DNA of 64,000 bases from Zootoca vivipara (GCF_963506605.1 NC_083283.1:9920001-9984000); one strand, 5' to 3'. Shown: positions 19,878 to 53,904, numbered from the stretch's first letter. Notes: a model not told the origin generated them from the letters alone. Program-made: numbers and translations.

Positions 19878-20267
19878 CAAAGGTAAAAGGAAAAGGTAAA
19901 GGACCCCTGGATGGTTAAGTCCAGTCAAACTATGGGGTTGTGGCACTCATCTTGCTTTCAGGCTGAGGGAGCCGGCGTTTGTCCACAGACAGCTTTCCGG
20001 GTCGTGTGGCCAGATGGACTAAACTGCTTCTGCCGCAACGGGACACCATGATGGAAGCTAGAGTACATGGAAATGCAATTTACCTTCCCGCCGCAGCGGT
20101 ACCTATTTATCTACTTGCACTGGTATGCTTTTGAACTGCTAGGCTGGCAGAAGCTGGGACAGAGCAACAGGAGTTCACCTTGTTGCGGGGATTTGAACCG
20201 CTGACCTTCCGATCAGCAAGCCCAAGAGGCTCAGTGGTTTAGACCGCAATGCTACCCGCGTCCCTCA
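19878..20267 (-). mobile_element. Sauria SINE, full length
   Basis: (AAAGGT)n tail, characteristic body, tRNA-like head; TSD TATACCAAAAC (19867-19877, 20268-20278). Confidence 0.92.
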
Positions 20268-20803
20268 TATACCAAAACTACAACAGCATTAAACAGGCAA
20301 GATCAGCGATGAAATGAAATTTTGGAGAAGGGAGCCATGGTTTAATTGTTTTTGGGATAAGCAAACCATGGTTTAGCATTATGCATGAACCAGTCCAGTG
20401 ACAAATCCAGAATTGTGAATTCTTGAACTTTTCAGACATGCAACCCAAATAAGATTTGCAGAGTGCAATCACAAATTTCCTGGATTTTACTTTCATTCAT
20501 GTAAAAAGATGAAAGTACATTTCTTTTATCGGGATTCTATCCTTAAATTCATTACAAATTTGGGGCTAGCAACTGCTAACAACAGTTACCTTCCATAAAT
20601 GGTGGGAAGGGTTAACTAAAGATGCACTCCATTCTCAGACTAAGTGTGATTGCTGCATGTATATCCGGTGTGGAAATAATGTCTGCAAATGAATACTGGA
20701 TGTAGTGACTTAAGTTAAAACAAAACAAAGCACTTGTGGAAATGGTACAGTAGACCAGATGAACTAACCTTTGGTTCAAGCCAGTAGGCTAAGTTATACA
20801 TAC

Positions 20804-20888
20804 CTTCTTTGTTAATTGCTTCAATCTTTGCAGGATAATATCGACAGTCTGTCCAACGAGCTAGAACCTCTTCTCCAGGTTGAAAATC
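20804..20888 (-). CDS. PHF20L1: PHF20L1 coding exon ([28 protein letters not shown])
   Basis: aaaag|GAT acceptor and AAG|gtatgt donor; Tudor motif [15 protein letters not shown]. Confidence 0.97.
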
Positions 20889-21088
20889 CTTTTTTAAAAG
20901 GTTTAAGAAAATAGTGTGTTAACATGACTGAAAATGTACTCAATGCTAGCATATAGAGAACTTAAATACCTGAACAAACTATATGGAGGATCTACTTATT
21001 TCTCTGCTTTCCATGAAAGCATGTTTATTATTATTACCCAAGACTTCCATATGAAGATATTCTCATAAGGGGAGAGATGAACACTTAC

Positions 21089-21260
21089 AATAAATTCATC
21101 ATCATCTTTCAGACCCTCTTTCCTCAGCGATGGCCGTTCTAGGGGTCGCAACCGATTGCTGTCCCAATAAATCCATTCATCGTAACGATGACTCCAGCGC
21201 TCAAAGTGGACAAGCATCTTCCCTTCTTCATAGTCTATCTTCTCAATGCGTGAAGGATAC
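21089..21260 (-). CDS. PHF20L1: PHF20L1 coding exon ([57 protein letters not shown]), first Tudor/MBT-like domain
   Basis: ttttgaag|G acceptor and ATT|gtaagt donor; ORF track 20996-21217 carries the same peptide. Confidence 0.97.
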
Positions 21261-21767
21261 CTTCAAAAAACAAAATGAAAGATGCTGTTTTGGCAGGCTA
21301 TAACCTCTGTATTTCAATGTACTAAAGACTCATAGGCCTGTTTGGCTATGCATATAATTTTCCATATGAATGGTTAAGAGAGTTCAGGCTGAAACTGCAG
21401 TAATTAAAAATGGAAGGCATAATACATCCCGGATCTACACAGCCAGTTGCACCCCCATCAAATGCACCCAACACAAATACTACTGGCAGCATAAATATTC
21501 AGAATATTTTTGTACAACCAGAAAGTTTATGAAATTACAGGTAGAAACATGCACTAGTGAGCTATTTGGGTTAGCTCTGTAAATGGTCGCAGGACAAATA
21601 CAGCCTATCTCTATCTCTTTTATTTCTCCACCCCAAAGAACTATCCAACTAAATTAAGCATGAAGACAGCCAGAGTAGCTGTTACACTGGTGACTGCAAT
21701 AGCTAAATATGTGCAGCCCATACAAAGCACAATCCTAATCATGTCTACTCATAAGTCAGTCCTGTTT

Positions 21768-27780: not shown

Positions 27781-29281
27781 ATAATAATAAAAGTAATAAT
27801 AATAATTTATTTATTTATACCCTGCCCAACTGGCTGGGTTTCCCCAGCCACTCTGGGCGGCTTACAACATATCTAAAGACATAATAAAAACATCAATCCT
27901 TAAAAACTTCCCTAAACAGGGCTGCCTTCAGAGGTCTTCTAAAAGTCTGGTAGTTGTTTATTTCCTTGACATCTGAAGGGAGGCCATTCCACAGGGAGGG
28001 CGCCAATACTGAGAAGGCCCTCTGTAATTTCACTTCTCGCAGTGAGGGAACCAGCAGACGACCCTTGAAGGAGGACCTCAGTGTCCAGGCTGAGCGATGC
28101 GGGTGGAGATGCTCCTTCAGGTATATTGGGGCCAAGGCCATTTAGGGCTTTAAAGGTCAGCACCAACACTTTGAATTATGCTTAGAAATGTCCTGAGAGC
28201 CAATGAAGATCATTCTAGACTAGGGGTCGGCATGTTATATGGTCCCAGCGGCCACTCCCAGTAACCAATCTAGCTGTTGCATTCTGGATTAGTTGTAGTT
28301 TCCAAGTCACCTTCAAATGTAGCCCCTCACAGAGCACATTAAAGTAGTCCAAGCAGGAGATAACCAGGGCACGCACCAATTGGGCGAGAGAGTCTGCGGG
28401 CAGGTAGGGTACCAGATGGAGCTAGCAGACAGCTGCCCTGGACACAAAATTGACCTGCGCCTCCATTGACAGCTGTGAGTCCAAAATGACACCCAGGCTG
28501 TGTACCTGGTCTTTCAGGGGCACAGTTACCCCGTTCAGGACCAGGGAGTCCCCAACACCCACCCTCCCCCTGTCCCCCACGAACAGTACTTCTGTCTTGT
28601 CAAGATTCAACCTCAATCTGTTAGCCACCATCCACCTGCCAACTGCCTCCAGACACTCACACAGGACCTTTAGTGCCCTCACTGGTTCTGATTTGAAGGA
28701 AAGGTAGAGCTAGGTATCATCTGCATACCGGTGGACACCCAGGCCAAACCCCTTAATGATTTCTCCCAGCAGCTCCATGTAGATGTTAAAAGGCATGGGG
28801 GAGAGGACGGAGCCTTAAGGCACCCCACAAGTGAGAGCCCAGGGGTCTGAACACTCATCCCCCAACACCACTTTCTGGACACGGCCCAGGAGGAAGGAGT
28901 GGAACCACTGCATAACAGTGCCCCCAGCTCCTCTAGACAGTTCAAAAGGATGTCATGGTCAACGGTATCAAAGGCCACTGAGAGATCCAGCAGAACTAGG
29001 CAACAGCTTATACCTCTGTCCCTAACCTGCCAGAGATCATCGACCAGGACAACCAAGGCAGTTTCAGTCCCATGATGAGGCCTGAATCCCGACTGGAAGG
29101 GATCCAAATGGTCCACATCCTCCAAGCGTGCCAGGGCTTGTTCAGCGACCACCCGCTCAATCACCTTGCCCAAGAATGGAAGATTTGAGACTGGGCGATA
29201 GTTGGCCATATTGGCCGGGTCTAAATATGTTTTTTTAGAAGCGGTTTAATAATCACCTCTTTCAGCAGGTCTGGGAAGGCT
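27781..29281 (-). mobile_element. L2-clade LINE, 5'-truncated, frameshifted RT
   Basis: NYRPVSNLPFLGKVIERVV...QSGFRPHHGTETAL...LLDLSVAFDTVDH; WMVANRLRLNLDKTE; C-terminal FRRPLKAALFREVF; (TAA) tail. Confidence 0.93.
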
Positions 29282-34305: not shown

Positions 34306-35729
34306 TACAGTATGTATCTCTGAGCAAGATCTTTCACTGAACTGTTACTGTGTCAATGACTTAGGTGGAATGGTGCAAGCACTCAGAAGGTCGTAGTCCT
34401 CCGAGTCCACCACAGGAGATCCTGTAGGAACTTGGATTCAGAGGGTCCAGCATAACAATCAGCAGAACCCAGTTTTCCTGGGAACCCAAACTCCACCATG
34501 CATTACCTAAGGAGTCATGGCAATCGGTGATCTCCAGGTCACAGTTGATACTAAGGGCAAAGACTTCTAGACACAAGGAACATAGGAAGTTGTCTTATAC
34601 CAAATCAGAAATTTGCTCAATCTAGTTCACTATTGTATATATGGGCAGTGCTATCTAGGGTTTCAGAGAGGGAGCAGGAGCCAGGAATCGAACCTGGAAC
34701 TTTCTGCATGCAAGAAAAGTATCTTAACACTGAGCCATAATCCTTGTCCTCAAAAAAAGAAATAAAAGTCTACAGCCCCACTCTGTAGGGAATGTAACAT
34801 TCTCACCCTTGCCTTGGCCTAAGCACTACAACAATTAAAACCATAGTCCCTACCAACTTGAACTTAAGTCCCAAACGTGCTTTAGAAAAAAGCAGTGTGT
34901 TTATAAATAAGCCCATATTTCAGACAATAGCTTTCTACGTAAGTCAATTTGTGCAAAAATCATCCTAGCTAGAAAGGAAACTCCACTGGTAAAAACACTC
35001 TTTAGGGATAAGTGAGAATGCATGCTTTAATTTTAATTTTTTTAAATAGAGATCATCTTTCTAATAAACAACTCTTCCTTGTTTTACTCTGCCCAGTTTT
35101 TAATAACCCCCAATACCTCTCTGGCTGCAACCCCAATTGGATGTGACTAAATTCATGGCCACCTACACAGCCTCTGGCCAGATGAGATTTCCCACAAATA
35201 TATATTTATGGGGGGGGGGACAAAAACTTTTGGGGGTTCCAGAACTATCACAGCGACTTAACATTTATTTATTTTTTAAAAAACGAAAACCATCTTTAAG
35301 TTAAAAACGAAAAACAGCTTTTGACATAGTAGAACATGAGCGGTGCAGTGGGGCTTCCCTAAACAAAGAGTGGAATTCATTTAGGGCGAAAGGAGGGCAA
35401 AACTATCACATAAGGCACTTCGGGGCATGTGCAGAATGAAAGGGGGGACACACACACAAACGCAATTCTGTCTTTGCTCAGGGCGCTGTATTACCAAAGT
35501 ACTCTCCGGTTACAGTAACCCTGCAACTTGGGCTCGCTTAACTCATGTGCATTGTATTCTTTATTGAGAAACTGGAAAGGGTCTGAGGGTGTCTCAGGGG
35601 AAAACCCAGTGCATTTTGACTGTAGGCGGCTTTTGGCACGACCCCCCGGGGAGCACCTCATTGCCTGCACTGATATCATGCCGCCTTTCTCTCCCAAGGA
35701 ACTCAAGGCGGTCCTGCTCTCCGCTCCGT

Positions 35730-36790
35730 CCCCTCAACAACCCTGTGAGGTAGGCCGGGCTAAGCACCCGCCCTCCTTCTCCCTCCAGCGGAAATTGCGG
35801 GTTCGAATCCCTCCGCGAGCCCCGAAGAGGCCGCTCCGCTCCCCCACGGCCTCCCTTGAGAGGCGAGGGGGGGCCTAGAGCCCCCTCCGGGGCAGGTCCC
35901 TGGCGCGGGCGCGGGCGAGGGGGAGCCCCTTCGTGAGGCACCGGTGGGCCTCTCTTCCCCTCCACCGGAGGCCGCAGCTGAGGCGGCGCTCTAGGGCCTG
36001 TCCGCCTGCGGGGCGGCTCCGGTCTGTCCTTACCCGCGGGCCGCTACCAGGCCCCGTCGGGGCAGCGCGGCGTCCCTTCTCGCTTCCCCCGGAGGGAAGG
36101 CCCTCAGCAGCAGCAGCAGCGCCGCCGCCTCCGACCCGTTTCTTCCTCCTCAGCGGGACCCATCGCCAGTCTTCTCCCGGCCCCGCCTCTCGCGTCCCAG
36201 AGACGGCGCGTTCGCGTCACTGCTGCGCGACGCAAGGAGACGCCGTCTTCCCCTCCCCTTTCCGCCACCATCACGTGACGCCAACGCACCCACCCGACAG
36301 AGGGAGGGAAAGTGGTAAGAGCCAAAGCGGGCAGGTCACCGCACGCCGCGGAGGCGCTCTAGAACACTTCCGGCTGCCGATCGAAGGCAGGGTGGGCAAG
36401 TTTTGAAATGCGGGCATAGCCAGAGATGGCGTGGGGTTGCTGGTTTTGTTTTGTTTTGAATAAATGCCTGCGCAAGCGAACGGCACAAGGAGAGGGTGCC
36501 GGTGAGTGGCGGAGCTTTAGCCGCTCCACTCAAGTAGAGGCGGTCGAGAGGAAACCAGGAGTGGCGGCTGCCCGCGCCGCGTTTCTCCTCTGTCCACTTT
36601 GGCCGTGGCCTGGGAGCCCTCGTGCGGGGGCGTCGGATTACACGCCCTGGATGGGGTCCTACGTTGGACGCAGCCGAGGAGGGTTTGCAGGCAAGGGAGC
36701 TCCGCATTTGAAAGCGGCCGATTGCTTCTTTTCGCCTCTAAAAGTTTAAAGCGGCCAAAACACTTTCCCAAAGGTCCTGGAGCGCCTAAG
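35730..36790. promoter_or_regulatory. CpG-island promoter of PHF20L1, probably bidirectional
   Basis: High GC/CpG content; E-box/CLEAR-like ATCACGTGAC at 36270-36279, ETS ACTTCCGG at 36366-36373; strong splice donors pointing both ways (36033 minus, 36502 plus). Confidence 0.88.
36034..36300 (-). other. PHF20L1: PHF20L1 non-coding exon 1 (TSS approximate)
   Basis: CGCGG|gtaagg donor at 36033 inside the CpG island, upstream of the ATG-bearing exon. Confidence 0.7.
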
Positions 36791-37067
36791 CTTTAAAGAG
36801 GAGTTGTCATCATCGTTATTTTTATTATAGATTTGTTTATTGTTTATACCCCTTTTCCCAGGCAGGGATTCAAGATGGCTTGCAGGTAAAAATAAACTGC
36901 TGAAAACATTGATAGAACTATGAGCATGCACACAATTAAACACTTTTATAAACACACACATATAATCTATTAAAACCATACCAATAATTACAGTAAAAAC
37001 AATGGCACCAGCCCTTCCATTAGAACCACCCTGAGATCTCATGAATTGTGGATTTACAAACATAAAT

Positions 37068-37425
37068 AGGTAATAAAGGTAAAGGATACTTGGATGGTTG
37101 TGTCTGGTCAATGGTGAGTGTAAGGTGTGGTGCTCATCTCGCTTTTCAGGTCGAGGGAGCTGGCGTTTGTCCACAGGCAGCTTTCCAGGTCATGTGGCCA
37201 CCATGACTTTTGGTGCAGCGGAACACTGTGACTAGGGGCAGAGTGCACGGAAATGCTGTTTACCTTCCTACTGCGGCGGTACCTATTTACTATATGCACT
37301 GCCGTGCTTTCGAACTACTAGGTTGGTAGGAGCTAGGACAGAGCAACGAGCTCACCCCGTCGCGGGGATTCAAACCACTTGACCACCTGATCAGCAAGCC
37401 CAAGAGGGTCAGTGGTTTAGGAACC
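37068..37425 (-). mobile_element. Sauria SINE, diverged
   Basis: (AAAGGT) tail and body homologous to 19878-20267. Confidence 0.88.
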
Positions 37426-37762
37426 ACCCACATACCGTACAAACTTTAATAATAATAATTAGCAGCAGTCAGTTCCAGAAGCCAGCAGAAAGCCAGCAAG
37501 CAAGGAGCCAGTCTGGCCCCCACAAAAATATAGTCAACAGCTGATTTTGAGGTGGGTAAAACAGGTGAGAGATACTCTCTGTCAATTTGGTCCAACCTTG
37601 ATGTTGGAGCTGATAAAGCTATTGGTTGTAGCCAACTAAGTTTTACTCAAAGTAGATGTGCCAATATTAATGAACCCAAGCTAGTCATGCCCATTAAATT
37701 TCAATGTGTCTACTCTTAAGTAGGAGTCACACTGGCTACAGCCTTAACAGTTCCACCAGACT

Positions 37763-40170: not shown

Positions 40171-40666
40171 CTGATATTCCCATTTCTGCACTGCTTTTCA
40201 AGATGCAGGACAGGTCTCTTTTGCTTCTGCCCACCTTTTCAGAAATCGTGCCCTCCAATTTGGCTGTTTGCAGCTCAATACTATAGGTGTCTCCTCAGAA
40301 GTAAGGCCCACTGCAGTTTATGAGACTTACTTCCTGCTCTGTGTGCCTAGGGGTAAACAACCTTAATAGTTTGTGGCTTCAAGCTTATATATCTATCTGA
40401 TTTTATTATTTTTTAGAATAATCACAACCCACTTCAACCAGTACCATTTACCATTTAAATCTGTATACAAAATGCTGGCATGGATCTTAATATGAAAATT
40501 GGAAACGGGGGGCAGGGCGGGAAGGATTCCCCTCATTCTCTGCATGTTTGGTGTAAATGTGAAAAGCAAAGGGTTACTGGGCTTTGTCTAGCAATTTCTG
40601 GAGGGCTGCAGGTTCCCCGTGTCTGATGTATAATTAAAAACAAGAGGGAATCTTAGGGCACCTTAA

Positions 40667-41020
40667 GGTAAAGGTAAAGGGACCCCTGACCATTAGGTCC
40701 AGTCGTGACCGACTCTGGGGTTGCGCGATCATCTCGCATTATTGGCCGAGGGAGCCGGCGTATAGCTTCCAGGTCATGTGGCCAGCATGACAAAGCCACT
40801 TCTGGCAAACCAGAGCAGCACATGGAAACGCCGTTTACCTTCCCGCTGTAGCGGTTCCTATTTATCTACTTGCATTTTGACGTGCTTTCGAACTGCTAGG
40901 TTGGCAGGAGCTGGGACCAAGCAACGGGAGCTCACCCCCGTCACAGGGATTCGAACCGCTGACCTTCTGATCAGCAAGCCCTAGGCTCAGTGGTTTAACC
41001 ACAGCGCCACCTGGGTCCCT
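40667..41020 (-). mobile_element. Sauria SINE, full length
   Basis: 14-bp TSD TTAGGGCACCTTAA (40653-40666, 41021-41034). Confidence 0.93.
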
Positions 41021-42319
41021 TTAGGGCACCTTAAAGACTGGCAGATTTGTGATGGCATTAGTGTTTGCGAACTACCATCCCCTTCATTCATCCTGTATCT
41101 GTTGGATTGTGGTTTATAAAAGGTTATGCCATAATGCAGGGCTATCTGCCTCAGTGGCTCTCCTTTCGGCACCAGGTCCTTGAAAGGTGTGAGCATGTGA
41201 AATGCCACTTTGAGTGGAATTTCAGGCAGACCAGCTTTAGTTATCTTCCTCCACCACTTCTGGCTTTTCAAGGAAACAGTGCTGAAAAAGGTGTTGCACC
41301 AGGGGACTAAACACCAGCCTCCGCTATCTTCTCTATAACCTGGTAAGCTTAGTGGGGAGCTTGATAGAGGTAGGGTGGCCACCTGTCCTGTATAATGCAG
41401 GACCATCCTGTATTTCAATGTAAAATGCTATGTCCTGTATTGATGCAGTTTCGTCCTGAATTTCGGATCTTCTCTCCCTCCCTCCACCAAGTTAGGGGTC
41501 CTCTCCAAATGCATGTGCTTGAAAGCGTGTTTGAAAGGTCATGCATTTAAACTCCGGGTAGCCAAGCACAGAGAGATTTACAAATTCATGTTTATGTGTG
41601 TGCGCGCACATGTGGTGTGAGGGGCAAATTCCAGAGGAGCCATCCTGTTAGGCTGCAATAGATTGTAATGGATTGCTTTGAAGTCACTTCAACACCAGAT
41701 TTTTTTTTGGGGGGGGGGGTCCTGTCAACCTTCCAACTCTACCATTCTATGATTCTATTACCCTTTCGTAAACACTCCGCCTGCACAGGGGAGGGCTTCC
41801 CCTTGTATCAAACTGTATCAAAAATTAAATCAGAATACATGTCAGTGTGTTATTAATTCTAGAGAGCCCTCATAAGCAGATATATATGTGCCAGTGTTAG
41901 AAACTCAAGATATGTCAGCTAGGTGCCAAATGACTCTTTAAACCAGGGTTACAGTCACCAAAATGGAATGACTAGTTGCCATTTTGGAGCCAGACACCTC
42001 AAAGGTCGTATTTTTTCAAGGTGACTTTTTGGTTCTTGGAATTCATTCTGATTGTGCAGTGGGTAGAATTCTACAGGATGTGTTGCTAGTGTGTGAAAAC
42101 AGTCAAGATCCAAGAATCCCCAGCCATGAGCTGCCAGATTTCGGAGACGTCAGGTCACTTGGTCGCAGGTGCAAAATGCACCTGGTGGCTGGCGAATTTC
42201 TAACACTGCTTTGATCAAAATTCTCTCTTACAGACGGGCTTAATGCCCCACTTTGGCAAAGCAAAAGGAGAAAGAACATGAGGGCTTTCTCCAAAGTATT
42301 TATAAGGCAGCAGCTAGAC

Positions 42320-43141
42320 CTAGCCCCAGACCCCCATTCGCTGGTTTCCTCCTCCTCCAGCTTCAAAGAACATGAAATCGATAAGGAAGCAAGCGGCAAG
42401 CATGACAGCTTTGATTTTAACATCAAGGTCCAACGGGAACTGGATCCCAAAGTTGTCAGTATCAGTGAAGAGCTCTTTCACAAGGCCAGTCCAGTGCTTA
42501 GAAATCCTTCCAACAGCCGTCTGCTCATCCAGTGACAGCACATCAAAATGAACATCTTCACAACAGCTGCATGTTATACAGGGCCCGATGATTTTAATGA
42601 CATCCTCTTGGAGTTCATTTTGGATAGTGAACTTAGGCAGACAGGGATCCCATGTCTGCTTAATATACCCAATAGGCATGCCTGGAGGGGCCTGGACTTC
42701 AAGCTCTTGCAAGCAGCACGGGAAAAAGCAGCTGGAGCACCGCAGAGGTCTCTGGAGCTCAATCACTTCCTGGCCCATGTTGTCCATGATTTTTATTGTA
42801 AATGGCCGATCCATTCCACAGCAGAGTCGCGCGCAGCAGTCGGTCTCCTCGGCTGCAAAGTATATCCTTTGCCCCCAAGCATTTTTTACTTCATACCTGT
42901 TGCTGGTTTCAAAGCCAACTATGATTTCCACAAGCTCAACCTTTTGCTGAATTACGATCTGATCAATCTGGCTTAAATATTCCAATCCCGGTGGACAGTT
43001 GGGAGGCGGAATTGGAGCTGGCATCCACACGACGCCCTGAAGGTCCTGACCGTGAACGGGCTGAGCTCCTGGGGCATGTGGGACATATCCGTATGCTACC
43101 TGTGGTGTAGGACCATGCTGGGGGGGTTGTTTTGGTGGCAT
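42320..43141 (-). CDS. Phospholipid scramblase 1/2-like protein, intronless copy A (273 aa)
   Basis: Single uninterrupted ORF: Pro-rich N-terminus, [33 protein letters not shown]-like GRISKHWTG, Ca-site-like [13 protein letters not shown]-terminal helix [17 protein letters not shown]. Confidence 0.95.
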
Positions 43142-43341
43142 TTCCGTGGGTTCGCGTGCACCTGTTGTTTCTTGAGGAGCTAGGCCATGCTCTGAGTGTG
43201 CCTCTTTGCAGTTAGTGGGCTGCCCAAGGAGGAGGAGATTGTTTCATAAAGGATTATCTTCCAGGTGGTCTGAGCCACCACCTGGAGGCTGAAATAATGC
43301 AGCTCATAAGGAATTTTAACCACATACTACACATCAGTGGG

Positions 43342-43357
43342 CCTATTGTTGAGTCAC
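43342..43357 (-). promoter_or_regulatory. Conserved AP-1/SOX composite element upstream of scramblase copy A
   Basis: CCTATTGTTGAGTCAC, identical in all three copies while flanks diverge. Confidence 0.6.
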
Positions 43358-43599
43358 GATAGGACAATGGCAACTGCAACTATCAGTTCCGAAGCTGTAC
43401 CCATGCGGCAGCGGTGAGGAATCTTTCCTTCTTTTTAAAGGGTCATTGAGCTCCACAAGAAGAAAACAACAACAACAACAACACTTGTGGGCTGGGGCAG
43501 CCCCAACCAGGCCGGCCCAGTAATAAGATTCAAGAATCCCGGTTGTTGCGAGCTCAAAGTCATCTCCTGTTGTGATGTGGCATATGTATGTCTGTGTCC

Positions 43600-43720
43600 C
43601 TCAGATGAATCCAACCTGTGCTTAAACTGTCTGAACTATCAAGACAGTTCTTCCTGATGTTCAGTCAGAATAAACTCCTTTCTTGTAACTTGAATCCATT
43701 GGTTCAGATTCTACCCTCCT
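43600..43720 (-). mobile_element. CR1 LINE fragment
   Basis: TTCTTCCTGATGTTCAG...CTTGTAACTTGAATCCATTGGTTC is typical of the CR1 ORF2 3' region on the reverse strand. Confidence 0.6.
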
Positions 43721-44179
43721 GAACTTCCCCAATGGCCACTGAAATAGTAGAGGCACTCACACTCTCACCAAGCCCAACACTTCCTGGACACATATTGAAC
43801 ATAAAGTGGCACTCCACACACAGCTGGCTAGTCAATAATAAGCATACAGAAATACTAATAGATCTGACAATTGATGCCAAGTGACATCAGACTAGGAGGT
43901 ACCTTCTGCATAAATATGCCAGGTGTGACTCATACACAGAAAAATACATACATTTAATTGTATTTTTTTAAAAAAGTGTTTCCATTTCAATGCATTATGA
44001 ATTCTAGAGCAGCACCCATAAATTGGAATGTCCACCACTATAGGTGCAGCCGCAATTCAAAAATAAGTAGTTTTAACAAGAAGCCCTCTTATTAACCAGC
44101 TTAACGCTCCATCTTAGCAAAGGAAAAGTTGAAGTAGCAACATGAGGGCATTTCTTCGAAGCAGCTTCCAGATCTATTC

Positions 44180-45127
44180 TCAGACCATAATTTTCTGCTG
44201 CCCTCTTCCTGCACATTCAAAAAACATGAAATCCACCAAGAAGCAGGCCCCCAGCAGGACAGCTTTCATTCTAACATCAAGGTCCAATGAGAACTGGACT
44301 CCAAAGTTGTCAGTATCAGGGAAGGCCTCTTCCAGAAAGCCAGTCCAGTGCTTAGAAATCCTTCCAACCGTGGTCTCCTCGTCCAACGACATCACTTCAA
44401 AGTTCATATCTTGACACAAGCTGCACAGTACACAGGGCCCGACGATTTTAAGGACATCCTGTTGCGCTGCATTTTGGATTGCAAATGTAGGCAGAAAGGG
44501 GTGCCACGTCTGCCTAATATACCCCACAGGGGTGCCTGGAGGGACCTGGACTTCAAGCTCTTGCAAGCAGCAAGGATACCAACAGTGGGAGCACCGGAGA
44601 GGTTGCTGGAGCTCAATTACTTCCAGGCCCGCATGGTCCATGATTTTTACTGTAAATGGGCATGCCACTCCACAGCAGTTTCGCACACAGCAGCCCGTTT
44701 CCTCAGCTGCCAAGTATATCCTTTGCCCCCAGCCATTTTTTATTTCGTATTTGTTGCAATTCTCAAAGCCCATTATTATTTCCAGAAGATCAATCTGCTG
44801 GTGAATGACTATTTGATCCAAGTGACTTAAATATTCCAATCCGGGAGGACAGTTGGGAGCTGGAAGGGTTGCCCGCATCCAGGTTACAGCCTGGGGGACA
44901 TAAATGCCAGCCATTTTTAGCCTACAACAAGATGGGGAAGATCCATAAACTCCGGGATAACCTTGCTTCATGTTCATCAACTCTCCTGGACAAAGCAGCT
45001 CAGCGCTGTTCTGTTCACCGTGTCCATGCGGTCTCACTGGTATGGGGCCAGCTTTCCTATTTGCTGAGGGAGAATGTTTTCGTAGCATTTTTGTGAGTCT
45101 GTGTTTATCTGGTTCTTTGGGAGCCAT
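44180..45127 (-). CDS. Phospholipid scramblase 1/2-like protein, intronless copy B (315 aa, most divergent)
   Basis: Single ORF with a complete scramblase domain ([10 protein letters not shown]...GRISKHWTG...DTDNFGVQFSLD...DFMFFE). Confidence 0.9.
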   Translation of the reverse strand: MAPKEPDKHRLTKMLRKHSPSANRKAGPIPVRPHGHGEQNSAELLCPGELMNMKQGYPGVYGSSPSCCRLKMAGIYVPQAVTWMRATLPAPNCPPGLEYLSHLDQIVIHQQIDLLEIIMGFENCNKYEIKNGWGQRIYLAAEETGCCVRNCCGVACPFTVKIMDHAGLEVIELQQPLRCSHCWYPCCLQELEVQVPPGTPVGYIRQTWHPFLPTFAIQNAAQQDVLKIVGPCVLCSLCQDMNFEVMSLDEETTVGRISKHWTGFLEEAFPDTDNFGVQFSLDLDVRMKAVLLGACFLVDFMFFECAGRGQQKIMV

Positions 45128-45294
45128 GCCATGCTCTCAGTCTGCCTCTTCGCTGTTACTGGGCTCAGGTTGCTGCCCAAGGAGGTGGGATTTATTTATT
45201 TAGCAACAGAGGAGCATTCAAAGGATGCGAGTCTCCAACCAGGAGGCTGATTCTGCGCATATGCAAGTTGAACTAAGTTCTAAACATCCCTGGA

Positions 45295-45310
45295 CCTATT
45301 GTTGAGTCAC
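45295..45310 (-). promoter_or_regulatory. Conserved AP-1/SOX composite element upstream of scramblase copy B
   Basis: CCTATTGTTGAGTCAC. Confidence 0.6.
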
Positions 45311-45959
45311 AGAGGTTGTGTGGACATTGAACTCCCCCAGAAGTCTTAGGGTTCTCCAGAACCACACCAGAAATCACTGGGAAGCAGAGCGTACAGCACA
45401 CCACCACCCCCTTCCTAAATCTTTGCCTTGGGGTCTACTTCAGATGGAGGAGTCTCTGTGACGTTCCAGTGTTTGCATATAATAATGTATGTACCGTACA
45501 TTGAAAGCAAATAAGATGATACTGTAATAGAGGTAAGTATAAGAATATGATTAAGGTGATGTTAGATAGGGAAGGGGAGAGAGTGAGCTGGAATGGTGAA
45601 GGATGATTGGCTAAGAATCTGAATGCAAGGGAGGAGGCAGTTGAGAGTCTGTTGGAAGTTTAGCCAGTTGGGATATGAAGCAGGGTTGGCTAGAATAGAT
45701 GAGTATAGGAGCAGCAGTAATACAGCAACTGCTACACTGGAAATAAAGCAACAGATAACAGGGGTGTTAGATACCATAATGCTTATGTACACAAAGTCAC
45801 CATCATCATCTTATGTATGTATTTATACCCCACCTGACAGGGGTGCTTTTAGAAAAGAGTAAACCACTAAAAACATAGAACATTAAAAATTGTTTTAAAT
45901 GATAGCATTAAAACTATCCGTCCATCTATCTAGCTATCTCAAAACGTACAGTCCTTTCA

Positions 45960-46710
45960 TTAACAGCAGTCAGTTCCTAAAAGCCAGAGTTGGCACAAGA
46001 ATTGTCTTCACCTGTCGGCAGAAGGACAACAAGGAGGGAGGCAATTTAGCTCCTCTAGGGAGGGGTTCCAAATTTGTCTGGGAGGAGCCACCACCAAGAA
46101 GGCCCTCTCCCGCATCCCTGCCAAGCATGCCTGTGAGTGTGGTGGTACTGAGAGAAGGGCACCCTCCCCACAAAAATAATTCAAAACATGGGGAGGTTCA
46201 TATGTGGGAATACGGTCTTTCAGATAGCTTGGACATAAGACGTGTAGGGTTGCCTATGTCATAACCAGCATCTCAATTGTGCCCAGAAACAGACTGGTAG
46301 CTAGTGAAGCAGTTATAGCAAGAGTCATCTACTCCCTTTATCTAGCCCTGGTCAACAATCTGGGCTGCAGCTCTTTGAGCCAACTGAAGTTTCTGACCAC
46401 TTTTCAAAGACAGTTCCATGTAGAGCTCATTTGTTGTTGTTTAGTCGTTTAGTCATGTCCAACTCTTCGTGACCCCATAGACCAGAGCACGCCAGGCACT
46501 CCTGTCTTCCACTGCATCCCGCAGTTTGGTCAGACTCATGTTGGTAGCTTCGAGAACACTGTCCAGCCATCGCATCCTCTGTCGTCCCCTTCTCCTTGTG
46601 CCCTCAATCTTTCCCAACATCAGGGTCTTTTCAAGGGAGTCTTCTCTTCTCAGTAGAGCTCATTACAATAATCCAAATGGGGTGTAACTTAGCCATGTGT
46701 CACCATGGCC
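45960..46710 (-). mobile_element. Old L2 fragment interrupted by BovB
   Basis: Degenerate similarity to the L2 at 27.9-28.4 kb (AGAAGGCCCTCT, GTAGAGC.CATT...TCCAA). Confidence 0.55.
46432..46652 (-). mobile_element. BovB LINE 3' fragment
   Basis: (TTG)n/TTTAGTCG tail and BovB body; 12-bp TSD GTAGAGCTCATT (46420-46431, 46653-46664). Confidence 0.9.
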
Positions 46711-47777
46711 CATAATTTAGTGTAAGTTTAGTAAAACAGTTGTGCTCCTTCTTGGCTACGAGAGGGGTGAAGCATTCAGTTCAGAGTGATCTATGGTGGC
46801 AGCAGGAATAAAAAGAGGCATTTAGTACAACACCCAGTAAAGTCCCAGATCAAAGCTGTACATCTTTAATAAAGTGGAAAAGTGGTCCAGGGGTGTGTGG
46901 GCAGAGCCAGAGCATTTCAGAGTAATGGGGTAGGGGACAACAACATATGGCAGTCTAATGCCAAGGCAAGAAGATTTATGGAGCATTGCACCACCACCAC
47001 ATTATTGGCTTTCCCTTCTGTGTTGATACTGCACGGAGTACCTGGTTGGACAAAGCTGGACCACAGCCTCTGCTCCCAGCTCACCCACCTGGGTTTCAGT
47101 GATAAATGTCAGATCAGCTTCCCCTTGCATTATCAAATCATGGATGAGCGAGTTCTTATTATGCACTTAGGCTTGGAAAGTGGCTTGGTAGTAGAGCAAC
47201 CAGAAACTTGAGACTCCAGGGGAAAGCAAAATGGGGAACCATGCAGAAACCCCTGGCATCCTGTATTTCAAAGAAATCCTCTTTCCCCCTCTACCGTACC
47301 TTCCCCAATGGTTACTGAAATAGAACAGGCACCCACATTCTCACCAAGCCTGACACTGCCCAGACACTCAAAGGCACTCCACACACAACCAGGTGCTCCG
47401 TAAAACCCACACAGCAATACTAACAGGTCTTCCACTAATCCATAACATGGGGCATTGGGCTCAGAGGCATAACAATACCAGGCATGACTCCTCTCTCTCT
47501 CCTCCCCCCCATATTCACACACACGTCTTGCATTAAAAAAAATGACAATGCAATAAAAGCAGTCTGCATTTCAATGTGACATTCATTCTAGAGTAGGACC
47601 CACAAGTAGGAATATTCTGACTCTATAGATGCAAGAGCTGCAGCAACAATACAAGATACCTAGTTCCAACAAAAAAAAAACCCTCTTGTGAGCAGGCTTA
47701 AGACTCCATCTTAGCAAAGCAAAAACAGAAGAAACCAGTGGACTTTTTCGAAGGCATTTATAAGGCAGTAGTCTAAC

Positions 47778-48557
47778 CTAAGCCCAGACCCCCATTTGCT
47801 GCTGGCCTCCTCCCGCGGATTCAAAAAACATGAAATCCAGGAGGAAGCAGGCCCCCAACAGGACAGCTTTCATTCTAACATCAAGGTCCAATGGGAACTG
47901 GACTCCAAAGTTGTCAGCATCGGTGAAGGCCTCTTTCAGGAAGCCAGTCCAGTGCTTAGAAATCCTTCCAACCGCTGTCTGCTCATCCAGTGACAGCACC
48001 TCAAAATTAATATCTTGGCACAAGCTGCACACTATACAGGGCCCAGTGATTTTAAGGACATCCTGATGGAGTTCATTTTGGATAATGAATTTAGGCAGAA
48101 AGGGGTGCCACGTCTGCTTAATATACCCAATGGGTGTGCCTGGAGGGGCATGGACTTCAAGCTCTTGCAAACAGCAAGGATAAAAGCAGCTGGAGCACCG
48201 CAGAGGTCTCTGGAGCTCAATCACTTCCTGGCCCACGTTGTCCATAATTTTAATTGTAAATGGCCGCAATGTTCCACAGCAGTTTCGTGTGCAGCAGTCG
48301 GTATCCTCAATCACTGAGTAAACCATTTGCCCCCAAGCATTTTTTACTTTATACTTGTTGCTGGTTTCAAAGCCAATTAAGATTTCCAGAAGCTCAATCT
48401 GTTGCTGAATTATCATTTGATCAATCTGGCTTAAATATTCCAATCCTGGGGGACAGTTGGGAAGTGGAGGTGGAGCTGGCATCCAAGTTATAGGACGTTC
48501 ATTTCTTTGACCTGGGGGAGCTCCAGAAGCCCCTTGAGGACGCTGGGGTGTCTTCAT
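47778..48557 (-). CDS. Phospholipid scramblase 1/2-like protein, intronless copy C (259 aa)
   Basis: Single ORF; close to recalled PLSCR1 ([26 protein letters not shown]-terminus). Confidence 0.95.
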
Positions 48558-48865
48558 TAGCAGTCCTGGATGTGGCCCAGGGGCTTGTTGACTGTCCCAT
48601 CCTGCATTGCCTCTGGTGTAGGGCCAGCTTTTCTATGAACTTGCAGGGGAATTGTCTTGGTGGCATTTCTGTGAGTCTGTAAACATCTGTTTTATTGGGA
48701 GCTATGTTGTTCTCTCAATGCACTGTTTCGCAGTTACTGGGCTCAGGTTGCTGCTAAGCAAAGGGGGAATGGTTTTTTGAAGGAGGACCATTCAGAAGAT
48801 GAGAGCATCCACCTGCAGACTGAAATGGTATAGCCCATACACAAGTTGAACTAAACATCCATGGG

Positions 48866-48881
48866 CCTATTGTTGAGTCAC
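48866..48881 (-). promoter_or_regulatory. Conserved AP-1/SOX composite element upstream of scramblase copy C
   Basis: CCTATTGTTGAGTCAC, followed by a second ACAAT. Confidence 0.6.
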
Positions 48882-49674
48882 AATGGTTGCAACTGTCTTT
48901 GTCCTCTGTCAATCCTTAAGCTGGACCTATGAGGCATACCAAGGAACTTCTCTCTCTCTCTCTCTTACACTTACACACACACACTTGCATCCATTATAAA
49001 CATCAAGTAAACAAATAAAGGATTTGAATGAAACCCTGCATGTCAAATTAAGGGTACCTGATTTCCCTCAGGCTTGCAAATGAATAACTGATTTCCCTCT
49101 GGCTAGCAGGGCTACAACCATTAATCAGTAAACACTGTGTAAATGTTTGCAAAGTAATCATTTAGCACCGTAGTGTGGATCAACAATGCAACCCATCAGA
49201 TGATTCGCCCATAATATGACTGTTAATCTACATTTGGCATTGCTAATTAAACTGTTTGGGTTTTGCAGAAAGCAAGCCCCACTGGCACAGGAAAGAAGTA
49301 GCTGAGAAAAATCACAATTTATTGCAAATGGAAGCTGGAGATGTATATATGTGTGTGTGTTGTGTGCATTATGCCTATTTCTGGATTATGTAACGCCACT
49401 CATGCAAATGGGGTTTTACAGAGTAGAAAAGAGAGGCTGAACTATAACATGATATCCATTAATTTGCAAATAATTTTGTGGGTCAGCTTGGACCAGAAAC
49501 TAGTTACCCACAAACTTTACCCACAGGAAGCTGCCTTATACCATGTCAGACCATTGGTCCATGTAGCTCAGTATCCTCCATTGGTTCAATTGGTGGGTCA
49601 CCAGGATCCACTACTAGATTGCTACTTGATCTAAGGTGAAGCACAGCAGTAATACTGCTACCTTGCAAACATAC

Positions 49675-49676
<2 letters not shown>

Positions 49677-49722
<46 letters not shown>
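49677..49722. repeat. (TAA)n microsatellite
   Basis: Direct tandem run. Confidence 0.95.
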
Positions 49723-49723
<1 letters not shown>

Positions 49724-50152
49724 TTGTTTTGGCTAAAGGTGGGGGCCAGATATGAAAATGTTGAAGACTCTGTTGAAGACAGTGACTCTCCAGATTTTCC
49801 TATAGGTCTCCCTTTCCAGCTCCACCTGGAGATGCCAAGGATTGAACCTGGGACTTCCTGCAGATGAACCATGGCCCTACCTGTATCTACCTAACACCTC
49901 CTTTGCCATATTTTAGGCACAAGCCATCCCTACCCTGCTCTGGATGGCTGCTGGAGTACAATCCTAAACATGCCTACTCAATCAGAAGTGACCTTCATTG
50001 AATTGACCTTGTCTTATGAATGGGAGAGAGATGACGCATATACTTCATGTGCATAATATGTGTGAAAGGATATATGGCTTCAGCTATGCATCTTGTCCCT
50101 GAGGAACAAATCACAACTGACCATTTTGCTTATCTGCTCTCTGCTTTAGCAG

Positions 50153-50213: not shown

Positions 50214-50793
50214 GTTACGTATACATTTTTATCACCTGTCTACAACAGTATTAGAGATGGTATGCTAAATTCACATGTTGCCCTTCCTTATTTTCCCTGG
50301 GCCAGATCAAATGTCGCATTCTCCTGCTCATGGCTGCTACCAAAAAGCCATTTCCTTTGCTGGTCACTAACATGTTGTGGGGGGTGGGATGTAATGTTTA
50401 AATGTATGCATTGGGAGATGTAATGTTTCACTCATGCATATGCCAGCGCTGTGCATAGATAACATATACTGCATGGCAAAAAAACCTGTCTTTTGCAGTA
50501 GTGGAGCCTGAGCTTTGCAACTTCCTCCCATAGAGATCCACCTAGTACCACGTAAAGATCTGGGAATTCACCCGAGTCTTGGATATGGTAGGATGCCAGG
50601 TAGAATGCTTTTTGTGGCTGTGATTACTTGCCTAGTTTTATGCTGTTATCTTTTATGTTGTGTGTGTCTTATTGATGCCTACTTTTGAATTGTCGGTTGA
50701 AATGAAAGAGCAGGTCAGAAACATTTAAAATAAATAATAGATGCTATGGGGCTGGGGTATTTCTAGGTGGGTTGGACAATGTAGAACAAGTTA

Positions 50794-51142
50794 AAGGTAA
50801 AGGGACCCCTGACCATTAGGTCCAGTCGCGGACGACTCTGGGGTTGCGGTGCTCATCTCGCTTTACTGGCCGAGGGAGCCGGTGTACAGCTTCCGGGTCA
50901 TGTGGCCAGCATGACTAAGCCACTTCTGGCGAACCAGAGCAGCACACGGAAATGCCTTTTACCTTCCCGCTGGAGCTGTACCTATTTTATCAACTTGCAC
51001 TTCGTACTTTCGAACTGCTAGGTTGGCAGAAGCAGGCACAGAGCAACAGGAGCTCACCCCATCACAGGGATTCGAATTGCCGACCTTCTGATTGGCAAGC
51101 CCTAGGCTCTGTGGTTTAAACCACAGTGCTACCCGCGCCCCA
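50794..51142 (-). mobile_element. Sauria SINE, full length
   Basis: 12-bp TSD TAGAACAAGTTA (50782-50793, 51143-51154). Confidence 0.93.
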
Positions 51143-51597: not shown

Positions 51598-51823
51598 ACG
51601 GATTCATTCAGCTCAGAACTCTCCACATCAGAGGTAGGGAACCTGTGGCCCTCCAGATGTTGCTAAATGTTTATATATTTTCTGTATAAATAACTAACTA
51701 TAAATCTGTTCACCATAAATGTTCTTGCACTAACTGCAACAGACCAACAGAACTACCCGCTTGGGAACTTGCTGTCTTCTGCCAGATGTCTGAGTAACAG
51801 GATTTTTGTTATTATTGTCGTAG

Positions 51824-52036
51824 ATGCACAGGTGCTTTTCTGGACCACGAGACCTCCTACGAGTGTTGTTCCACCAACCCCTGCACAGGCTGTGTCCTGG
51901 CTTGCCGCAGGAGCCCTCGGCTTCTTACTAACGGCTACTATTTACTCACAGAGGACAGTTTTCTGTCTGATGAAGACGGCAACGTCACGCTGAGTCTATC
52001 CCAAACAAGTGTTACCTATAAAGAGAAATTAGTTAG
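51824..52036 (+). CDS. TMEM71: TMEM71 coding exon (CTGAFLDHETSYECCSTNPCTGCVLACRRSPRLLTNGYYLLTEDSFLSDEDGNVTLSLSQTSVTYKEKLVR)
   Basis: cgtag|A acceptor and TTAG|gtaaat donor; diagnostic CRRSPRLLTNGYY..TEDSFL.D.DGN.TL..SQTSV.YKE.LVR motif. Confidence 0.95.
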
Positions 52037-52794
52037 GTAAATGTGACCTCCTGTATAAGTTCTATTGGAGAAGCAAGTGCCTTCCACACATTCTGCAAGA
52101 CTATTGTTACTGAGTCCTGTTCAGATATTTTCATGCACCATCTCCCTCCCTATAGAAGGCCTTATCAAAGGAACTAACTACTATACAAACCAGACTATTG
52201 AGTTTACTGTTTTGGTTTGCTGCCTCTGGTAGCTTGTTGAGAATCTATATTCTTTGCAAAGGTGCAGATTAGGAGTGGATAACCTTTTCAACCTGAGCAA
52301 CTTTCGCTCATAATTAGCCGTCTAGGGGTCACATGCCAGTGGCAGAAGAGGCCAGAGGAAAAAGTTGAGTGGTGCCCAGGGCAAAAGTGTGTGTGATTTC
52401 ATTGTACAACAAGCTACATTCCAGGCATACAAAAGTCAGAGGTTTCAACATACAGACATGCACATCTCTTAGATCCAGGCAAAAAAGAGATACAATCACA
52501 GCTCAGTGACAATTCAATACCGGTAACACTTGAAGAAGACCCAGGACAGGGGTTTGGGCTGAAGAGAAGTGGGCTTGGTGTGGGGATTGTGCCAAGGAGC
52601 ACAAAAAGAGCACTGGAGGGCTGCATTTGGCCACCACATCTGAGGTTCTCCATCCATGGTACAGATTACCAAGAGATAAATTTTGGTTCTCTGCTCTGAA
52701 TCATGTTGCTGTTGATAACAATGATAACTCACCATCAGTAAGACAGTGCTTTCCAAAAGCCATTAAAAATAGAGACCTCTCCCTTCTGGCAGGG

Positions 52795-53463: not shown

Positions 53464-53617
53464 TGAGAGTAGCAGAAGAATATGCGTAAAACTTAGTTAC
53501 ATGTAAGTTAAGTACTTAGTTTCCGTTACAGATGAGAACTTAATGGGTTAAGTGCTTCATAGGCATTTGTAGAAGATCAGTTTTGTACTAATGTTCTGGT
53601 TTATTTTTTTGTGCCAG

Positions 53618-53781
53618 AATATTTCGGAGAAGAAAGAGAATCCGCCGATCCCTTGCTAGTTTGTTCAGTATTGGAGCCTCTAAATCATGGTTGAACAGTA
53701 CCACTATTGACTTACCTTATGTAGAGGATGCTTGGTTTGATGGAGACGTGAAAGGGGACACCAATGAATATTATGACACTG
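53618..53781 (+). CDS. TMEM71: TMEM71 coding exon (IFRRRKRIRRSLASLFSIGASKSWLNSTTIDLPYVEDAWFDGDVKGDTNEYYDT)
   Basis: gccag|A acceptor and CTG|gtgagc donor; matches recalled IFRKKKRI..S.SSLF....SKSWL...ED.W. Confidence 0.92.
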
Positions 53782-53904
53782 GTGAGCATTGACTTTGCTC
53801 ATGAAAGCTAGAAGCTACTCTAATAGGTATTGTACTTAAAGACCTGTGACAAGGCGCAGTACTTCTGTGCTTATATGTTTTTCAATGGTTTTTTTTTTTT
53901 ACAG

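Follow-up and report, generated by a model that had tools for sequence, protein, structure and literature searches.

We analysed a window of 64,000 nucleotides (nt) of the genome of the lizard Zootoca vivipara, which contains no runs of N and in which all coordinates are counted from the first letter. On its minus strand lie three single-exon phospholipid scramblase (PLSCR) genes, here called g1 (42320-43141; 273 amino acids (aa), stop codon present), g2 (44180-45127; 315 aa, the fastest-evolving copy) and g3 (47778-48557; 259 aa, the best conserved copy). A Pfam profile search matched all three to the scramblase family PF03803 (E values of 4e-92, 3e-82 and 9e-92 for g1, g2 and g3) with scores of 276-308 bits against a cutoff of 25.4, over profile positions 1-220 or 6-220 of 221, and none of the open reading frames (ORFs) is broken by a stop or a frameshift. 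A preliminary description of this DNA had listed three minus-strand ORFs of 273, 315 and 259 aa, each with a complete scramblase domain free of introns, stops and frameshifts; its coordinates and lengths proved correct, and the domain match is near full length in every copy.

All three genes point in the same direction within 6.3 kb. Their proteins are 64-73% identical, and self-comparison of the window gave 73-84% DNA identity among the three units: 42237-43027 (g1) aligns with 47695-48485 (g3) at 84.5%, 43983-45318 (g2) with 47567-48889 (g3) at 73%, and 42225-43027 (g1) with 44086-44881 (g2) at 77.6%. The homology extends ~190-330 nt 5' of the start codons and 85-480 nt 3' of the stops and then ends, an extent that appears to equal roughly one mRNA. 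On the 5' side, homologous flanks on the minus strand occupy 43142-43360 (g1; this may be a promoter or former 5' untranslated region (UTR)), 45128-45318 (g2) and 48558-48889 (g3), and the g1 and g3 5' flanks are ~67% identical as against 84% for their coding DNA. On the 3' side, likewise on the minus strand, alignment with the g3 flank persists over 42237-42319 beyond g1, and the flanks of g2 (43724-44179) and g3 (47300-47777) are homologous to each other. This continuation of the unit into both flanks bears out the earlier description of the genes as a tandem array. A tblastn search of the window with the three proteins returned just these three loci and no fourth copy or relic. A high-copy interspersed repeat that is not part of the genes (46300-46700, DNA depth to 2.5 million) has inserted between g2 and g3, which helps to account for their wider spacing. 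A second very high-copy repeat lies at 43500-43900 (DNA word depth up to millions), and a long trinucleotide microsatellite, which translates in several frames as a run of Ile or Leu, is found just upstream of the array at 49617-49864.

We aligned the three proteins with canonical lacertid, Rhineura, turtle and elephant proteins, using human PLSCR1 motif definitions (Ca2+ loop, nuclear localization signal (NLS), Cys motif and helix) from earlier work (bioRxiv 10.1101/2020.06.22.165258). The EF-hand-like Ca2+ loop, D[TA]DNFG[IV]QF[PS]LD, keeps all six ligand positions (1, 3, 5, 7, 9 and 12) in g1-g3, the non-classical NLS (GKISKHWTGI in the reference) reads GRISKHWTG[LF] in all three, and the C-terminal hydrophobic helix KAV..ACFL.DFMFFE is intact, its Asp included. 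The Cys-rich motif CSxC..PCC (CSSCFYPCC in one copy) retains four Cys; compared with the lacertid canonical form CSSCC[YC]PCC, it has lost one or two central Cys, and it resembles the CTSCYFPCC of elephant PLSCR1 (the human motif is CCCPCC). At the other end of the protein, the start regions of g1 (MPPKQ) and g2 (MAPKEPDKH) align with the canonical start MEPQDKS, indicating that the copied sequence spanned the whole coding sequence.

The proline-rich N-terminus differs from that of the canonical proteins. Whereas canonical proteins have ~95 residues with 10-12 PxxP motifs before the CPPG motif, g1-g3 have 34-92 residues with 2-3 PxxP and no PPxY. This domain is degenerate in all three copies: it is shortened in g1, depleted of proline in g2, and lost by frameshift and re-initiation in g3. 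The g3 counterpart of the g1 and g2 start codons is found at 48664-48666 and the main ATG of g3 at 48555-48557; because the ancestral start now opens an out-of-frame upstream ORF of 55 codons (48499-48666, minus strand) that overlaps the main ATG, g3 has lost its original N-terminus by a frameshift followed by downstream re-initiation. Podarcis orthologues also have the 259-aa form, and the loss is therefore old. A proline-rich N-terminal domain with PxxP/PPxY motifs occurs in PLSCR1, PLSCR3 and PLSCR4; as PLSCR2 lacks it too, it is a mark of PLSCR1-type activity and not of the family. Apart from this domain, and with the Cys-rich motif reduced, the sequence features of g1-g3 place them in the PLSCR family.

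An AlphaFold2 model of g3, built from a 13-sequence alignment, showed 12 strands and a C-terminal helix at 227-249, with a mean predicted local distance difference test score (pLDDT) of 69.5 and a predicted template modelling score (pTM) of 0.74. Its best matches in the PDB were At5g01750 (1zxu, probability 1.00) and the Tubby/TULP1 C-terminal domains (probability 0.99), at E values of ~1e-3 that amount to moderate support; nothing in the PDB matched by sequence, and the link to Tubby-like barrels comes from the fold search alone. Scramblases have long been predicted to adopt this Tubby-like barrel.

A protein search with g3 retrieved PLSCR1/PLSCR2-type proteins of tetrapods. The PLSCR1-like parent that had been proposed is an overstatement in so far as PLSCR1-like and PLSCR2-like parents are not separable. 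Intact 1:1 orthologues of g1, g2 and g3 are all present in Lacerta agilis and in three Podarcis species (P. raffonei, P. lilfordi and P. muralis). Since the P. lilfordi accessions (CAI5778987 to CAI5778990) follow one another without a gap and list g1 first, then g2, then g3, we took these genes to be adjacent and in the same order. Orthologues of g1 in L. agilis and Podarcis have 273 aa and are 90-91% identical, those of g2 are 82-89% identical between the window and Lacerta and Podarcis, and those of g3 are 91-93% identical, with 259 aa in P. raffonei and P. lilfordi; the canonical gene shows 94.7% over the same kind of species pair. The distances to Lacerta and Podarcis suggest that the window species is a lacertid, in the pattern seen for the canonical gene of Zootoca. 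The array and the canonical PLSCR gene of 320-322 aa lie on different chromosomes in L. agilis (86.6 Mb and 95.9 Mb) and in P. raffonei (92.5 Mb and 102.3 Mb); lacertid array chromosomes measure 86.6-92.5 Mb and canonical-gene chromosomes 95.9-102.3 Mb. In the amphisbaenian Rhineura floridana, the new-type copies are on a 323.6 Mb record and the canonical gene on a 155.5 Mb record. Rhineura has at least three new-type copies (P0005, P0130 and P0131) that are >90% identical to one another, which points to a separate recent duplication or gene conversion within its own array. Salvator, Tiliqua and Lerista each have a single short protein that resembles the new type (267 aa in Salvator, 237 aa in Tiliqua). 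A profile search with the clade alignment brought up, within its best 120 hits, no further member from geckos, snakes, iguanians, anguimorphs, turtles, birds or mammals, which is weak evidence of absence.

The novelty that the preliminary description attached to these genes is limited. Automatic RefSeq models exist for new-type genes in at least five lacertoid genomes, and the orthologues in Lacerta and Podarcis are labelled 'phospholipid scramblase 1-like' or '2-like', the Rhineura copies 'phospholipid scramblase 1-like'. The annotated models of the window genome itself are exact suffixes of the ORFs, starting at Met40 in g1 (234 aa), at Met72 in g2 (244 aa) and at Met1 or Met26 in g3. In the literature we found no paper describing scramblase retrogenes, intronless PLSCR genes or squamate scramblases; the trio is already named by automatic annotation, and no study describing it was found.

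A maximum-likelihood tree of 43 proteins placed the lacertid g1 group, the g2 group, g3 and the Rhineura copies in one clade (support 96/87), with a stem branch of 0.47 for g2. Support for the attachment to this clade was 94/91 for the 267-aa Salvator protein and 89/81 for the two skink proteins. The new-type clade was nested within squamate PLSCR1/2 (100/99), apart from the proteins of turtles, crocodile, birds, mammals and amphibians. The approximately unbiased (AU) test rejected a grouping of the Rhineura copies with the Rhineura canonical gene (p 0.0022) as well as one of the lacertid copies with the lacertid canonical gene (p 0.0024). What is secure is one origin, later than the parting of squamates from other reptiles and earlier than that of Lacertidae from Amphisbaenia. 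That lacertids and Rhineura share it bears out the proposal that the event is old. Judged from the orthologues, the triplication predates the split of Lacerta, Podarcis and the window species; relative to one another, g1, g2, g3 and the Rhineura copies were not ordered by the tree.

The same tree bears on whether tandem duplication took place at all. Three independent retrocopies of one parent might have inserted side by side, and with shared homology of roughly mRNA size, homology of flanking non-transcribed DNA cannot be demonstrated. However, the copies share one orientation within 6.3 kb, they group together and with Rhineura to the exclusion of the lacertid canonical gene, and they have in common a conserved block ~180-230 nt upstream of the ancestral ATG. 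We consider three separate insertions barely credible.

No intron interrupts the coding sequences of g1-g3, each of which is one ORF between the homologous start codon and the stop. The human PLSCR1 gene is divided into nine exons, of which exons 2-9 carry coding sequence (PMC9158361), and by analogy the uninterrupted coding sequence would span several exons of the parent. Taken together, the missing introns, the relocation to another chromosome and the mRNA-sized homology make retroposition the best inference, though not a demonstrated event. In the preliminary description, retroposition had been put forward alongside the remark that no poly(A) relic or target-site duplication (TSD) was visible; the intronless structure and the different chromosome support the former, and we likewise found no such hallmark. 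Given a synonymous divergence (dS) of 0.24-0.42 between the paralogues and an age beyond the Lacertidae-Amphisbaenia split, poly(A) and TSD relics are expected to have been erased, and their absence does not discriminate. The sole nearby polyadenylation signal is an ATTAAA at 43953-43958, 222 nt past the g2 stop and after a run of seven A.

With no poly(A) tail or TSD left, retroposition is not directly seen, and the array could instead go back to a DNA-level segmental duplicate of a PLSCR gene that lost all its coding introns, or descend from an older intron-poor scramblase at this locus. Either course is improbable. Every coding intron is missing, whereas human PLSCR1 is coded across exons 2-9 (PMC9158361), the copies are on another chromosome than the canonical gene, their clade falls within squamate PLSCR1/2 rather than outside amniote PLSCRs, and the homology of the units stops within a few hundred nt of the ORF, at about the size of an mRNA.

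All three genes have been kept open by long-term, relaxed purifying selection. Within the domain, pairwise ratios of non-synonymous to synonymous divergence (dN/dS) among the paralogues were 0.34-0.62 at dS of 0.22-0.48. Our own three-taxon codon model (GY94-type, F3x4, 233 domain codons) gave a dN/dS (omega) of 0.47 among g1-g3 and rejected omega = 1 (2dlnL 19.3, p 1e-5). Under neutrality, 17.5 stop-creating substitutions would be expected, and the probability that all three ORFs stayed open was ~3e-8 (2.6e-8), as estimated over three branches with lengths from dS and with indels left uncounted. Together with the intact orthologues in four other lacertids, this upholds the earlier claim that the genes are kept by selection, with the qualification that selection is relaxed. 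The 38-aa N-terminus of g1 is 92-95% conserved among orthologues, on par with the g1 domain, whereas the g2 N-terminus is conserved at 71% as against 86% for the g2 domain. In one DNA run, six of the eight variants inside the g2 and g3 ORFs were synonymous, some of which may be mis-joins between paralogues.

Upstream of the genes, a 17-nt block, TGTGACTCAACAATAGG, with an AP-1-type TGACTCA inside it, recurs on the minus strand at 43342-43358 (g1), 45295-45311 (g2) and 48866-48882 (g3), ~180-230 nt upstream of the ancestral ATG. The g2 and g3 versions agree at every base and the g1 version differs at one; chance alone would give 0 matches. The flank around the block is ~60-67% alike. This block (the TGACTCAACAATAGG block) is a candidate promoter or UTR element; beyond it, nothing speaks for the promoter that the retrocopy was earlier said to have acquired. 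Scans of the 1-kb upstream regions for interferon-stimulated response elements (ISREs), gamma-activated sites (GAS) and TATA boxes gave nothing convincing. We set aside GAAANNGAAA at -847 of g1 as a regulatory site, as this position is the 3' flank of g2.

We mapped RNA-seq and DNA reads to 42900-48899 (6000 letters), with no positive-control gene. The RNA came from three runs of one study with the same species label and with tissues unknown, at ~7.5 million reads each (~6% of a run). Across these three shallowly sampled runs, RNA depth was zero on the three ORFs and their flanks, the lone exception being one partial read at 48300-48499 in run X8, while a DNA run covered the whole stretch at ~25-30x as single-copy sequence. 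Real RNA coverage was restricted to the two interspersed repeats (46300-46700 and 43500-43900). The reads there matched at 95-99% and continued into sequence unlike the window, indicating transcripts of other repeat copies. In the sampled RNA runs g1-g3 are silent or very low, and the RNA-seq check that had been suggested earlier thus came out negative in these samples.

We propose that the array represents a functional, or until very recently functional, lizard-specific PLSCR1/2 subfamily that arose as a retrocopy, was then triplicated and has been selectively kept, and we put the probability of this reading as a whole at about three in four. Several observations weigh against it. Besides the empty RNA runs and the missing poly(A) and TSD relics, the 1.6 kb that follow the g1 and g3 stops contain no AATAAA, the DNA upstream of g1-g3 is CpG-poor, and the upstream ORF of g3 overlaps its main start. 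No ISRE lies within ~800 nt upstream of any copy, and the interferon link drawn in the preliminary description has no support from the sequence. Constraint is weak, with an omega of 0.47 and protein divergence 1.3-3.3 times faster than that of the canonical gene. A single shared origin is insecure for the skink and teiid copies: the AU test gave p 0.47 for an independent origin of the skink copies (Tiliqua and Lerista) and p 0.10 for that of the copy in the teiid Salvator.

Four of these points (no reads from three RNA-seq runs, no canonical polyadenylation signal near g1 or g3, the overlapping upstream ORF in g3 and the CpG-poor upstream DNA) would be explained if the genes were silent relics, that is, long functional but no longer expressed in this species and now pseudogenes in the making with their ORFs still intact. 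We regard this as unlikely. The three ORFs are unbroken in this species and in four other lacertids, protein divergence on the terminal branches is just ~2x that of the canonical gene, most polymorphisms are synonymous, and the upstream block is conserved; moreover, the RNA sample is shallow (6% of each run) and comes from one study with unknown tissues.

Judged from exons searched one at a time, the array sits between PHF20L1 (minus strand) and coding exons of TMEM71 (plus strand), which confirms the locus originally assigned to it. On the TMEM71 side, a stop-free stretch at 51798-52037 (plus) matches PF15121 with an E value of 7e-35 (profile positions 35-107), and the next exon, at 53592-53789 (plus), continues the match over profile positions 106-151 (E 1e-10); TMEM71's first coding exon was looked for and not located. 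On the other side, two PHF20L1-type MBT/Tudor exons lie at 20718-21262 (20999-21262 and 20718-20918, minus) and match PF02820 (E 1e-4) and PF18104 (E 2e-8), in keeping with the N-terminal exons of PHF20L1. They were assigned to PHF20L1 rather than PHF20 because TMEM71 is the neighbour. Between the two genes, a GC- and CpG-rich stretch at ~35600-36800 (GC 0.52 in the 36-38 kb bin) may be their shared divergent promoter. A reverse-transcriptase fragment of a LINE-type (long interspersed nuclear element) retrotransposon is found in the PHF20L1 region (28682-29245, minus; PF00078, E 6e-13), and tRNA-derived short interspersed nuclear elements (SINEs) in reverse orientation occur at 40665-41019, 50788-51141, 19887-20265 and 37126-37427. 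The first two of these flank the array as direct repeats of 355 nt that are 87% alike. We ruled them out as long terminal repeats or duplication boundaries, since they are tRNA-derived SINEs with more copies in the window, the left one having its own TSD, TTAGGGCACCTTAA.

For the retained subfamily we envisage the following course. In a common ancestor of Lacertidae and Amphisbaenia at the least, and probably of all Lacertoidea, reverse transcription of a full-length PLSCR1/2-type mRNA, start codon included, would have placed a copy between PHF20L1 and TMEM71. The retrocopy would then have been duplicated in tandem to three genes before the split of Lacerta, Podarcis and the window species. 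Going by their motifs and the model, its products are predicted to be PLSCR1-like proteins with a C-terminal membrane anchor, Ca2+ binding, an importin-type NLS and probably palmitoylation. Their most likely role would be that of tissue- or condition-restricted membrane or nuclear adaptors rather than of bulk lipid scramblases. A more specific role is a doubtful possibility: the genes may encode lacertoid-specific, fast-evolving scramblase-derived factors, devoid of a proline-rich domain, that serve innate defence, for instance as decoys or restriction factors against viral proteins targeting PLSCR1, or the male germ line. If so, the RNA runs would be empty because expression is confined to stimulated or specialised cells, and a change of partners would lie behind a diversification of the three copies that mainly affected the N-terminus.

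Among known systems, one close to the array is the canonical squamate PLSCR1/PLSCR2-like gene (320-322 aa in Zootoca, L. agilis and P. raffonei), which is also a PF03803 protein, is 66-72% identical and has a homologous start region, Ca2+ loop, C-terminal helix, NLS and Cys-rich motif, the last of these in reduced form in the array. The canonical gene differs in lying on another chromosome, in retaining the proline-rich N-terminus and in a protein that evolves 1.3-3.3 times more slowly, and by analogy with human PLSCR1 (PMC9158361) it is presumed to be multi-exon. The array genes share with human PLSCR1, which is interferon-stimulated and antiviral, the family, the fold and all C-terminal functional motifs, but they lack a nearby ISRE, evidence of inducibility and a PPxY or WW-binding motif. 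Expression of human PLSCR2, a paralogue of PLSCR1, is restricted to the testis (PMC9158361), and in vitro the protein scrambles lipids only once the proline-rich domain of PLSCR1 has been added to it (bioRxiv 10.1101/2020.06.22.165258). It resembles the lizard genes in that this domain is missing in PLSCR2 and degenerate in the lizard copies, which were also absent from the RNA samples; however, PLSCR2 is a tandem DNA duplicate in the 3q24 PLSCR cluster that arose independently in mammals, whereas the lizard genes are intronless, squamate-specific and at a different locus. Having lost the domain that PLSCR1 needs for scrambling, the array offers a natural experiment for separating the functions of the C-terminal barrel from those of the proline-rich N-terminus. 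It adds a lineage-specific gene family to squamate genomics and leaves knowledge of scramblases unchanged. Like other retrogene-derived tandem families of vertebrates, it combines an intronless copy at a new locus with local amplification and faster evolution than the parent, although it has none of the poly(A) or TSD hallmarks left. On the reading that we favour, it would be a dated case of this kind, in which a retrocopy of an interferon-linked membrane protein multiplied at a new locus and has been retained since the lacertid-amphisbaenian ancestor.

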